Part shown: positions 51,001 through 60,274 of the stretch, one piece after another
Numbering within the stretch: the first letter of the stretch is position 1
Layout of the letters: every line of letters begins with the position of its first letter
DNA from: Octopus bimaculoides
Lineage: Eukaryota
Length of the DNA stretch: 64,000 nt
Reading direction: 5' to 3'
Assembly: GCF_001194135.2 (NCBI RefSeq)
Contig: NC_068981.1
Location: 57,982,108-58,046,107, forward strand
Notes under the pieces: model-generated
The model's database searches: none
What the model saw: the letters and a program-made list of their open reading frames with translations, nothing else
What the model was told of the DNA's origin: nothing
Position numbers and translations under genes: made by a program

Positions 51001-54000
51001 ATATTATCTTACTTGGAATCAGGTGATATTTGGTATCTGACCCATGCAAGCATGGAATAGTGGACGTTAAACAAAGGTGAAACAAACATACCTATTAAAT
51101 TATCTATTTTTTCCTTTTCGTTACTATCCATAACTAACTAATACTTCTTCACCTCTCACATATTTTTCTTACTTATCAATAGAATTCATTAAGGGTGATG
51201 GTACTGCCATTTGCTATGAAGAGTTTCTTACTATCCAAAACTCAATACCTTTCTTTTTAAATAGGCATCCTTACTTTTGGTCAAATCAGCGGAAACTTCA
51301 GTTCTTGTTAACTGTTGGAAGTGATATCCTAAATGCTTTGATGTTACAGTAAGTGGATATAGTTCTATTTTGGGTCACCAACCCTAATTTTATGTTTTCT
51401 CAAATATAAAAAATTATCAGACTAAAAGGTGAACAAGACAGTAAAAATTCTTGAGGTGGTTGCTTGACAACTGAGAAATAACATTCAGATTATACTCAAA
51501 TCCCATCCTACCATCTTAAAAAGAAAGGACACATTAGATAATGTAGTCCAAAGTACACTATGCTTGGAAAAAAAAAAAAAGATGGAATGGTCATAAGCAA
51601 AGCACCTTTGATCAATGTTTATCTAAGTCTAACATTGCTAGGATTTTCAATGATTTTTCAGTCATAGCTGTGCTTCAATTACTGACATTGAGAATTTCAG
51701 TAACAGCAATATATGCTTAAAGCAAAATGCTGTGCTTTAGCAGTAGTGTTTACAAACGGTGCAGTGAAAATTTGGATGAAGTTATATCAGACATGAGAAA
51801 GTCAAACGTATGAAAACACAATCAAGCTAGTTGGAAGGCTGCTGCTATTGGGCAACCCATTCTGGAATATAAAAATGATGTTGACAGTACTCAATGTTGA
51901 TGATGATAAGAATTGAATTAACTATGTTTATATGGCTTATCTAGTGGAGTCAGTTATTTTTCAATCCACTATTCAGTCTTTTCATATATGGTATAGAAGT
52001 AGGTGGTTTAAAGTTGTCTGCTCCTTCTATTAAGAAATGATACTGATATGAATTTTTGAGTAATATAGGCTAAGGCAAGTAACATGTTTTATCTAAAAGT
52101 AACAAGCTTATGGATGCCTACTGAAGGATTTGATCATCCTATTGATGATGAGACCAGAAATATATTTTTTCAGCCTTTGTATATTTCTTTTACCATCAAA
52201 CTGAAATTAAAACAATAATAATTTTGGAATTTGTTTGAAATTTTTTCTAATAACATGCCGTTATTATAAAATAATTTTATATTACATTGAAATATCCTCA
52301 AGTTAATATACATTGATACTTTTTATATTTTTTTAAATGAGAAAAAACTACAACACAGAAGCGAGCATCATATACTGTCTGAGCATTTGTGACACAATTG
52401 GATATTTTAAGAATTGGGTAAGATTTTAGCCTTCATTTATAGTTTTTTTTCTCCTTTCTCTGAGAGAGTTACAGCTTGTCTAAATGTATCTTGCTGAAGT
52501 ATTTGTCTCTGTTATGCATACACAAAGGCTTTATTTTGATAGTATTACCCATATATATATATATCTGAGAACATGTATAAACTTATTCAATAAAACATTC
52601 AGTAAACAAACATTAGATGTTAGCATGGTAAAATAGTAAATTGTGCACTTTATCCCCTCTATGAGATTGTTGTTATTTAACCCCTGGTCAGCTCTTATCT
52701 TTCAGATCTAGCAGAGCAGGATTGATGAAGCATCTTTGGTTACTTAATAGTCTGACCAGGAAAAAAAATTTTATTCCATGCAAAACAGAACCTTCTGTTA
52801 AACTTTGCTCCAAGACCCAGTTTAGGTCAAACTCTTTCATGGAAAGAGAGAACACTTGCTCACTGAATAAATTACAGAAAAAGTGCAGATACTAGGACAT
52901 ACATAATGACCAGACATAAATCATTCACAATACAAATAGGTTATTCTTTGCAAATTTTTGTTTTTCCAAGAAATAATCTATAAATCTGATAACAAAAGGT
53001 ATTGTTTAATCATAATCATTTGCTAGGTTTCACAAAATAATGAGCCGAGACATTTTACTTTTATTAAAGCTGACAAAACTGGCATAAGTGGATCAAAAGA
53101 GCAAAATATACATATTTGCAAATTTAGTGAAATTTGTTGATAGGAAAATTGTACTTATAAGCATGTTATTATGCATAAAGGTGAGGAAAAAAATACTGTA
53201 ACTTTTAGTTTAAAAATGCATTTCCATGAAATTTATTTAGTTCAAGATAAGACAAAACTTATAAACTATGCATTTAGATGGCTAAATATTATTAAATGAA
53301 TGTTATACAGATGACTATATCAGGAGAGCATTGTACTATATACTGTAACACAACAAGTTCAGCATCTCATTGTTCCAAGTACAAATCTCTGTGATTTTTG
53401 CCTTACATTTTTTTTTACATTCATAAACTAAATTCTAATCATAGATCTGCTATTTGTACTCTTTCAAAATTTTGGCTTGGTGTCTGTTCAATATAATATT
53501 ACTTATTTAAATATGACCTTTTCAGATGTCGCTTATTGATATGATCATCTTAGAAGAATTACAGAAAATCAGGCCAATAAGGAATTCAATGATTGAACTG
53601 GTGATCTTCTTATACAACACCTGTATTTTGTATAAACAACTGTAAGTGTTTATATACTGTTTATACACATGATTTATTTCAATCTTAATCCTTTTTAATC
53701 TGGCAGTGGATAATCCTTGCATCATTCCCTAATCCTTTAATTTAATTTATTCTAACACCTATTGTTTTCTATTCCTGTAGGAGTTAGGTGAGTTTTTTAG
53801 GTTTGAAGTGTAAAAAATGTCTTCCTCAATCTTCCACTTCATTAAAAGTAGAAGACTAAGGAAGATTCCTTTCACATGAATTGCTTAGTTTTTATATACC
53901 CAACTATCATCTTTCACACACACATACATGTATATCTTATTCTCTCTTACACACAACAGCTGATTCCTTTTATACACAGCTTTTTTCTCTCAACTCATTT

Positions 54001-60274: not shown

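Follow-up and report, generated by a model that had tools for sequence, protein, structure and literature searches.

The window analysed here, 64,000 nucleotides of the Octopus bimaculoides genome (assembly GCF_001194135.2, contig NC_068981.1, positions 57,982,108 to 58,046,107 of the forward strand), carries a large gene whose product joins ankyrin repeats (ANK), a low-complexity linker, a pseudokinase and a KEN domain, the kinase-extension nuclease domain known from IRE1 and RNase L. Three of the four residues that make up the catalytic site in IRE1 and RNase L are replaced in this KEN domain, which lies in an intact reading frame under purifying selection and most likely serves as a non-catalytic module. 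Positions are given throughout in window coordinates.

Gene structure

Our final model of the gene, built from homology and splice-site analysis, has 18 exons on the + strand between 5996 and 60274 and a coding sequence of 4965 nt, or 1654 codons with a single, terminal stop. The gene itself has at least 18 exons and extends over at least 54 kb, with further 5' exons upstream of the window; going by the Octopus vulgaris model, the missing 5' end that lies there amounts to about 82 codons. A first model (16 exons, 1524 codons) came from tblastn probes combined with analysis of splice sites and phases, the probes being human IRE1 and RNase L (used as probes only), fish homologues, the O. vulgaris protein and molluscan homologues. 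Later homology searches added two exons and lengthened one, giving the 18-exon model.

The last three coding exons, designated f (52342-52417), g (53526-53641) and h (60136-60274), follow one another on the + strand in phases 2 to 0, 0 to 2 and 2 to stop. The interval for which a degenerate KEN domain had originally been predicted begins at 52342, the first base of exon f, and ends at 60274, the last base of the TAA stop in the terminal coding exon; the peptide that was flagged at the time, read on the + strand from 53565, falls inside exon g. Exon f (76 nt) encodes the middle of the KEN domain with an invariant Trp at its end, is bounded by AG and GTAAGA, and aligns with the family segment ...TMIDIINAV...DW. 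In O. vulgaris its AG/GT sites are kept and the two nucleotide differences are both synonymous, leaving the peptide identical. Exon g (116 nt, bounded as ttttcag/ATG and CT/gtaagt) encodes the helices that bear the catalytic tetrad in IRE1 and RNase L and is matched by the Argopecten KEN domain in tblastn (E=5e-9). Exon h, with the acceptor ctttag/G, finishes a Leu codon started in exon g; the Argopecten match to it (tblastn, E=1e-8) reaches the end of the protein, its sequence is identical in O. vulgaris, and the C-terminus common to the family, ...Y[KR]xF[FY]*, agrees with exon h being read through to 60274. A search of the window found no second sequence resembling exon g, and no mutually exclusive version of it with the canonical residues.

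Residues of the nuclease site

HMMER alignments to yeast Ire1, mouse IRE1 and RNase L, together with that of the family profile to human IRE1, are gapless over the Arg-Asn-...-His motif. The columns were matched from these alignments, and for the residues themselves we use the standard numbering, Y892/R905/N906/H910 in IRE1 and Y655/R667/N668/H672 in RNase L. All four octopus codons lie on the + strand in exon g. Ile (ATA, 53577-53579) occupies the position of IRE1 Y892, RNase L Y655 and yeast Y1043; Tyr (TAC, 53613-53615) that of the Arg of the HEPN Rx4-6H motif, IRE1 R905 and RNase L R667; Asn (AAC, 53616-53618) that of IRE1 N906 and RNase L N668; and Leu (TTG, 53628-53630) that of the catalytic His, IRE1 H910 and RNase L H672. 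Neither the Rx4-6H motif nor the Tyr/Arg/Asn/His tetrad is thus present in the octopus protein, which reads I/Y/N/L and retains Asn alone.

The original prediction had arrived at the same I/Y/N/L by eye, and the alignments to IRE1, RNase L and the family profile bear it out. Its further statement that three of four catalytic residues have been lost holds against IRE1 and RNase L; as a loss by the octopus it does not hold for the change of Arg to Tyr, which is the state of the whole family. In the octopus motif, IRPIRN..., the Tyr in place of Arg and the following Asn are as in the family, and it is the upstream Tyr and the His that are gone. The Tyr and Arg positions lie 12 residues apart, as in RNase L, compared with 13 in IRE1. 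The structural residues that were said to be kept, W, F, LGxP and YFxxFPxLF, are indeed present, and are conserved family-wide.

The upstream Tyr is reportedly needed for the mechanism of the KEN domain, according to work on Ire1. For the HEPN motif, mutation of either the Arg or the His of Rx4-6H abolishes KEN RNase activity, each of the two being needed in RNase L, Ire1 and PrrC, and KEN domains also need the Asn that follows the Arg (PMC3710099). HEPN domains without Rx4-6H have been proposed to be non-cutting RNA binders, and for KEN domains the table of the same survey gives the motif as 'mostly conserved (95%)' (PMC3710099), implying that inactive KEN versions exist.

Could the canonical residues be restored in the mRNA or supplied from elsewhere in the protein? 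A-to-I editing, read as A-to-G, would change ATA to Val or Met and TAC to Cys, and TTG offers no target. Editing cannot regenerate Tyr, Arg or His at these codons, which answers a question attached to the original prediction; it could alter only the remaining Asn, by turning AAC into GAC, AGC or GGC. The prediction had also pointed to an HRHR sequence in the C-terminal tail as a possible substitute for the missing residues. In the alignments this basic tail (R-x-x-R...Y-K-P-F-F) is matched by ASDRTDRTCYKPFF in the molluscs and by CSHERLFQPYY in IRE1. Because the whole family and IRE1 share it, the tail is, on this alignment, best regarded as ancestral and not as a new source of catalytic residues.

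Reading frame and selection

The orthologous locus of O. vulgaris (OX597814.1, 51.76-51.86 Mb) contains every exon with AG/GT splice sites. There the 1524 codons of the 16-exon model read without interruption, and the later additions, three segments in all, are likewise intact and flanked by AG/GT. On the 16-exon model, comparison of the window with O. vulgaris by the Nei-Gojobori method gave a ratio of replacement to synonymous substitution rates (dN/dS) of 0.19 for the whole gene, from 58 synonymous and 43 replacement changes at dS = 0.064. The ratio was 0.05 in the ANK region, 0.24 in the linker, 0.065 in the pseudokinase and 0.17 in the KEN domain, where four synonymous and three replacement changes were counted.

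A more distant octopod, with intron identity to the window of about 76-79%, is represented by Logan contigs from SRR11869384, SRR11869385 and SRR11869391, which cover exon g. The 116 nt of this exon differ at nine sites, seven of them synonymous and two giving conservative replacements (dS 0.40, dN 0.02, dN/dS 0.05); the binomial probability of two or fewer replacements among nine changes is 0.001. The splice sites of the exon are intact in this species too, and I/Y/N/L is the same in all three octopods. Judged by these substitutions, exon g behaves as a translated exon and neutral decay is rejected.

The claim of a probable pseudo-RNase kept in an intact frame, the core of the original prediction, accordingly holds, with 1654 codons open in the window and an open frame in O. 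vulgaris. A dN/dS near 1, named at the outset as the mark of neutral decay, is not what we see, the values being 0.19 for the gene, 0.17 for the KEN domain and about 0.05 for exon g against the distant octopod. A decaying pseudogene, in which the substitutions are simply neutral damage, would account for the difference at three of four catalytic residues, for the degenerate kinase motifs and for an identity of just 30-34% to other molluscs. That explanation is refuted by the 1654 open codons in the window, the open 16-exon model and three added segments in O. vulgaris, the conservation of all splice sites, and dN/dS values of 0.19 for the gene and 0.05-0.07 for its ANK, pseudokinase and exon g parts; we give it practically no credence.

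Domain architecture and fold

From N- to C-terminus the protein, of at least 1654 residues, consists of ankyrin repeats, a conserved helical region (...GPEFFLK...GKEWL...), a low-complexity linker of about 900 residues, the pseudokinase and a KEN domain of HEPN type. The domain set of RNase L is thus present in a single chain, with the helical region and linker placing about 1000 residues between ANK and pseudokinase.

All exons lie on the + strand. Those for the ankyrin repeats, mostly one repeat each, are at 5996-6085, 15322-15420, 18062-18169, 18553-18651 and 19485-19583, located by tblastn with the protein P0041 and molluscan homologues. Two exons, 21702-22031 and 24432-24569, encode the conserved helical GPEF region and were recognised from tblastn, splice sites and conservation in O. 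vulgaris. Exons e6 (27780-28739) and e7 (31633-33551), which with their intron span 27780-33551, encode about 960 residues of low-complexity linker with peptide repeats and were found with P0041 in tblastn. The repeats in exon e7 are in tandem, and the exon differs in length between the window (1919 nt) and O. vulgaris (1901 nt) through in-frame insertions and deletions.

The pseudokinase begins in exon a (36558-36708), which encodes its N-lobe; the donor at 36708 was picked by homology, and the O. vulgaris model uses 36672. Exon b (38235-38423) carries HGR in place of HRD, and exon c (41527-41620) retains the catalytic-loop Asn and has NYG in place of DFG. The activation segment and APE region lie in exon c2 (48543-48622), whose junction matches P0041, the C-lobe in exon d (50059-50252), detected by tblastn with fish kinase-KEN proteins at E values down to 1e-12, and the kinase/KEN junction with the first KEN helix in exon e (51265-51348). 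The AVK Lys is present and the glycine loop is degenerate. Read from these motifs, which are dead, the kinase is a pseudokinase.

Domain assignments agree with this layout. The spliced exons f to h match Pfam PF06479, Ribonuc_2-5A (KEN), with E=7.3e-10 and 39.5 bits against a cut-off of 23.3, and the match remains above that cut-off in the wider protein context (E=7e-9, 36.3 bits). Against chains of the Protein Data Bank the same exons gave HMMER matches to RNase L (4o1o, E=0.012) and yeast Ire1 (2rio, E=0.05), and the family profile matches human IRE1 at E=2.6e-70 and RNase L at 4e-47. In the C-terminal 514 residues Pfam places Pkinase at residues 181-381 (E=2.6e-21) followed by Ribonuc_2-5A at 426-511, and the N-terminal part is matched by ankyrin families alone (Ank_2, E=2e-28). 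No match to an endoplasmic reticulum-luminal sensor domain was obtained in the octopus protein or in the molluscan homologues P0042 and P0045, which were scanned in full. The first 82 residues of the O. vulgaris model are hydrophilic and carry no membrane span of the IRE1 kind. The octopus protein is predicted to be cytosolic, without a luminal or transmembrane part.

For the fold we used the C-terminal 405 residues of the Argopecten protein, for which AlphaFold gave a predicted local distance difference test score (pLDDT) of 87.8 and a predicted template modelling score (pTM) of 0.86; superposed on IRE1 kinase-RNase structures, this model has template modelling (TM) scores of 0.75-0.80. The octopus protein is 32% identical to the modelled segment, with alignment gaps only in loops, and its KEN domain would be expected to have the same fold.

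Family relationships

A full HMMER scan over 1.84 billion representative proteins returned as its top match the O. vulgaris protein CAI9715102.1, named 'IRE2', at 98% identity. The next 14 matches (E=4e-53 to 1e-31) belong to a lophotrochozoan family of ANK-pseudokinase-KEN proteins, 1300-2200 residues long when full-length; a few of them are incomplete models. Their sources are bivalves (Argopecten, Solemya, Mytilus, Ostrea, Pinctada and Dreissena), gastropods (Haliotis, Patella, Biomphalaria, Batillaria, Pomacea, Candidula and Elysia) and the annelid Owenia, and all are labelled "uncharacterized" or "hypothetical". The layout of ANK followed at a distance by Pkinase and KEN was seen also in the two family homologues that were scanned in full. 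Word-indexed protein searches with the spliced KEN domain, with kinase plus KEN and with C-lobe plus KEN returned a genomic open reading frame, teleost kinase-KEN proteins or nothing, and never the O. vulgaris protein.

A tree built by neighbour joining from the kinase-KEN module places the octopus sequence within the lophotrochozoan clade, beside Owenia and other molluscs and apart from true IRE1. The gene is an orthologue of neither IRE1 nor RNase L and belongs to an unnamed lophotrochozoan family; this and the dead kinase are corrections to the original prediction. They also bear on its suggestion that the domain might act as a decoy or regulator by pairing with active IRE1 in the same cell. 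The kinase/KEN pairing surfaces are common to the superfamily and the fold is probably retained, which speaks for such a role, but the protein belongs to an old, separate lineage that runs through the lophotrochozoans and has arthropod relatives, and it is only about 25-30% identical to IRE1. Its predicted location is moreover the cytosol, it carries ankyrin repeats and lacks luminal and membrane-spanning parts, and nothing in our data ties it to IRE1. We consider a decoy role very improbable.

The tetrad columns were taken from 189 aligned stretches in about 190 related sequences. Y-R-N-H is found in 127 of the 189, comprising IRE1 proteins and the kinase-KEN proteins of fish and cnidarians. 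The combination Y-Y-N-H occurs in 19, all of them members of the family (the named ones from gastropods and bivalves, together with two unnamed Logan assemblies). Dreissena has Y-H-N-H and Owenia Y-H-S-Y, and I-Y-N-L appears in octopus sequences only. In a family alignment the column of the catalytic Tyr is Tyr in 16 of 16 non-octopus sequences, and that of the His is at least 90% His. The molluscan motif FRQYKN...LF[VIL]YNCCLH[FY]DK is strictly conserved, and the pseudokinase motifs of these proteins are HGN and xYG. This distribution indicates that the change of Arg to Tyr is old and family-wide, predating molluscan diversification, and that Tyr to Ile and His to Leu arose on the octopus lineage, the cephalopods sampled for this placement being octopods.

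Identity between the octopus protein and other molluscan members is 30-34%, against 38-58% among those members themselves, apart from Batillaria and Pomacea at 87%. In relative-rate tests of the KEN domain against nine family members, with Owenia as outgroup, octopus-unique changes numbered 16-22 compared with 10-16, and p fell below 0.05 in one of the nine comparisons; we therefore do not claim accelerated KEN evolution in the octopus.

More distant relatives were also encountered. Uncharacterised proteins of bed bug, tick, spider and scorpion combine ANK, a kinase-like domain and a more degenerate KEN domain (YRD-, PKRD, YVAN and FSNP at the four positions), which points to a family spread across the protostomes in which the nuclease site was lost more than once. 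A hemichordate relative, P0116, reads LSRQ; ANK was not detected in it, and a 'GT4-conflict' glycosyltransferase domain is present. The large family of teleost kinase-KEN proteins (400-570 residues, some with ANK), annotated 'IRE1-like', has a full Y-R-N-H site (FIRNLxEH) and shares a stretch, VAGM..Y[YF]..., with the octopus protein; RNase L is reported to be lacking in ray-finned fishes (PMC10400998). Our literature search found no characterisation of this family, nor of a further residue loss within it, and the nearest statement is a general remark that some homologues other than RNase L bear ANK repeats (PMC10400998).

Function of the degenerate KEN domain

What would a KEN domain of this kind do? 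If the octopus site is read in terms of the established mechanism, Ile and Leu stand where the general acid/base pair of Tyr and His should be, Tyr has taken the place of the transition-state Arg, and Asn alone is left. Because Ile and Leu occupy the proton-transfer positions, canonical metal-independent cleavage of the IRE1/RNase L type should be impossible here. The substitution patterns, for their part, show that the domain is constrained and behaves as a translated one. Selection would then be maintaining a binding or pairing function of the pseudokinase-KEN unit within a large scaffold protein that carries an ankyrin module at its N-terminus; by analogy with IRE1 and RNase L, this may involve the back-to-back pairing surface, the RNA-binding groove, or both, of a scaffold or sensor. 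Since the KEN domain is constrained despite the loss of its site, we conclude, with a probability of roughly 0.7, that it is a degenerate domain held by purifying selection and most likely a non-catalytic module in a protein of the ANK-pseudokinase-KEN family in which both the kinase and the nuclease sites are degenerate.

Several observations weigh against this conclusion. The molluscan relatives retain Tyr, Asn and His in the strictly conserved YNCCLH, and the family may keep a variant activity that has been lost or changed in the octopus. The comparison of the KEN domain between the window and O. vulgaris rests on seven substitutions (four synonymous and three replacement), and the strong signal of selection comes from one exon of 116 nt in one more distant species. 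Finally, CAI9715102.1, the sole public gene model, joins exon e directly to exon h and skips f and g, the exons of the catalytic site.

The first of these points raises the alternative that the KEN domain is still a ribonuclease and works with non-canonical residues: the family-wide Tyr might, for instance, stand in for Arg, while R16 and R19 near the Ile, the Tyr that follows the Leu, and the basic tail took over acid-base catalysis. The very strong conservation of the pocket motif in other molluscs does suggest a functional site beyond a scaffold, and the octopus protein retains Asn and the flanking Arg residues in an exon under strong constraint. Proton transfer is impossible for Ile and Leu, however, and the HEPN Arg and His are each required in RNase L, Ire1 and PrrC (PMC3710099). 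The basic tail, being ancestral and present in active IRE1 as well, brings no new compensation. We regard retained nuclease activity as unlikely.

The public gene model bears on a further alternative, namely that exons f and g lie outside the main mRNA, as relics or as a minor alternative cassette, and that the KEN domain is disrupted. The e-h junction of CAI9715102.1 is in frame, f and g together measuring 192 nt. From within exon h the model then passes, through an internal GTAATT donor, to an exon of four codons (NGTV*) near 62.86 kb of the window, which replaces the last 21 codons of h. In agreement with this, no protein derived from a spliced transcript and containing f-g-h was found in the protein collections. 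Against it, CAI9715102.1 (1513 residues) also lacks the ankyrin exon 18062-18169, the segment 21903-22031 (the 3' part of exon 21702-22031), exon 24432-24569 and the 36-nt segment 36673-36708 of exon a, although each of them is conserved in O. vulgaris and can be aligned with the family. Because it misses at least four further segments of clear homology, we consider the model an incomplete and unreliable prediction. The AG/GT sites of f and g are conserved in O. vulgaris, and those of g in the distant octopod as well; both exons align residue-for-residue with the KEN domain of the family; exon g shows seven synonymous changes to two replacements next to an intron that is about 22% diverged; and the C-terminus of the family matches exon h up to 60274. 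Alternative skipping of f and g may occur, but their absence from the main mRNA is decidedly unlikely, a shade more so than a surviving nuclease. The label 'IRE2' is a naming error. Besides being misnamed, the public O. vulgaris model is short by at least six coding segments, and the entire region of the catalytic site is among what it lacks.

A non-catalytic KEN domain, the conclusion that we prefer, is of interest for what it would say about the superfamily. IRE1 and RNase L couple dimerisation to RNA cleavage, and to our knowledge they are the only kinase-extension nucleases that have been studied. The octopus protein raises the question of what role a kinase-KEN module has if it is unable to cut, and Y-Y-N-H in other molluscs against I-Y-N-L in Octopus provides a natural comparison set for the four catalytic residues. 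More speculatively, the protostome ANK-pseudokinase-KEN proteins may form a third ancient branch of the IRE1/RNase L superfamily, composed of sensors, gated by a ligand or by RNA, that respond by binding or assembling and not by cleaving; the ankyrin repeats would bind a small-molecule or nucleotide signal, as they do in RNase L, and among the molluscan members the octopus protein, with its Tyr and His gone as well, would have moved furthest towards a purely non-catalytic mode. We offer this as a tentative proposal, with the odds clearly against it. If true, it would describe an RNase L-like sensor of innate immunity or stress that operates without nuclease activity.

Other features of the window

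The window has a G+C content of about 35% and contains assembly gaps and pieces of retroelements; scans with Rfam and for tRNAs found no non-coding RNA in it. Fragmented reverse-transcriptase open reading frames lie on the + strand at about 43000-43400, in the intron between exons c and c2 (Pfam RVT_1, E=1e-7), and transposase-like remnants (...HPPYSP...), with no Pfam match, at about 8700-8900 on the + strand and at 40214-40429 on the - strand. The orthologous contig of the distant octopod lacks a block of some 2.8 kb (54486-57318) that lies in the g-h intron of the window and probably reflects a lineage-specific insertion. Simple tandem repeats occur in this block, among them a tract of GGATGGATGG at about 54990-55100. 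About 0.7 kb past the stop codon is a near-perfect palindrome (60952-61541), with arms of about 269 nt that are 93% complementary; at its centre are an (ATT)n tract and the assembly gap 61134-61357. Either a fold-back artefact of assembly or a genuine repeat that forms a hairpin could account for it.

Comparison with known systems

The closest parallel in architecture is RNase L, which has the same order of ankyrin repeats, pseudokinase and KEN domain, and in neither protein is the kinase a phosphotransferase. The octopus protein nevertheless stands outside the RNase L clade, groups with lophotrochozoan proteins and scores lower to RNase L than to IRE1. The RNase L lineage is reported to be restricted to jawed vertebrates, ANK repeats elsewhere being regarded as independent gains (PMC10400998). 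In the octopus protein, moreover, the ankyrin repeats number about four to five and lie about 1000 residues from the pseudokinase, Tyr, Arg and His of the nuclease site are all replaced, and both the DFG Asp and the HRD Asp are missing. Given the loss of these two Asp residues, binding of nucleotide by the octopus pseudokinase is doubtful.

IRE1 (ERN1/ERN2) is the best match for the kinase-KEN module in both sequence and fold, with the profile value of 2.6e-70 and TM scores of 0.75-0.80 for the family model. It differs in having a luminal sensor and a membrane span, both of which the octopus protein lacks; the octopus N-terminus is instead made of ankyrin repeats, and HGR, NYG and I/Y/N/L stand in place of the IRE1 motifs.

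The true relatives are the lophotrochozoan proteins, for example those of Argopecten irradians (XP_069113852.1), Mytilus trossulus (XP_063441107.1), Ostrea edulis (XP_048759681.2), Patella (KAK6174412.1) and Owenia (CAH1796528.1). They share with the octopus protein the architecture, the HGx and xYG motifs, the change of Arg to Tyr and the ...Y[KR]xF[FY] end, and differ from it in keeping Tyr, Asn and His (Y-H-S-Y in Owenia). Degenerate KEN and HEPN domains as such have already been recognised, while this family and this further loss are undescribed in the literature that we searched. Set beside the inactive HEPN and KEN domains on record (PMC3710099), the octopus protein represents a separate, lineage-specific further loss in a family that otherwise keeps three of the four residues.

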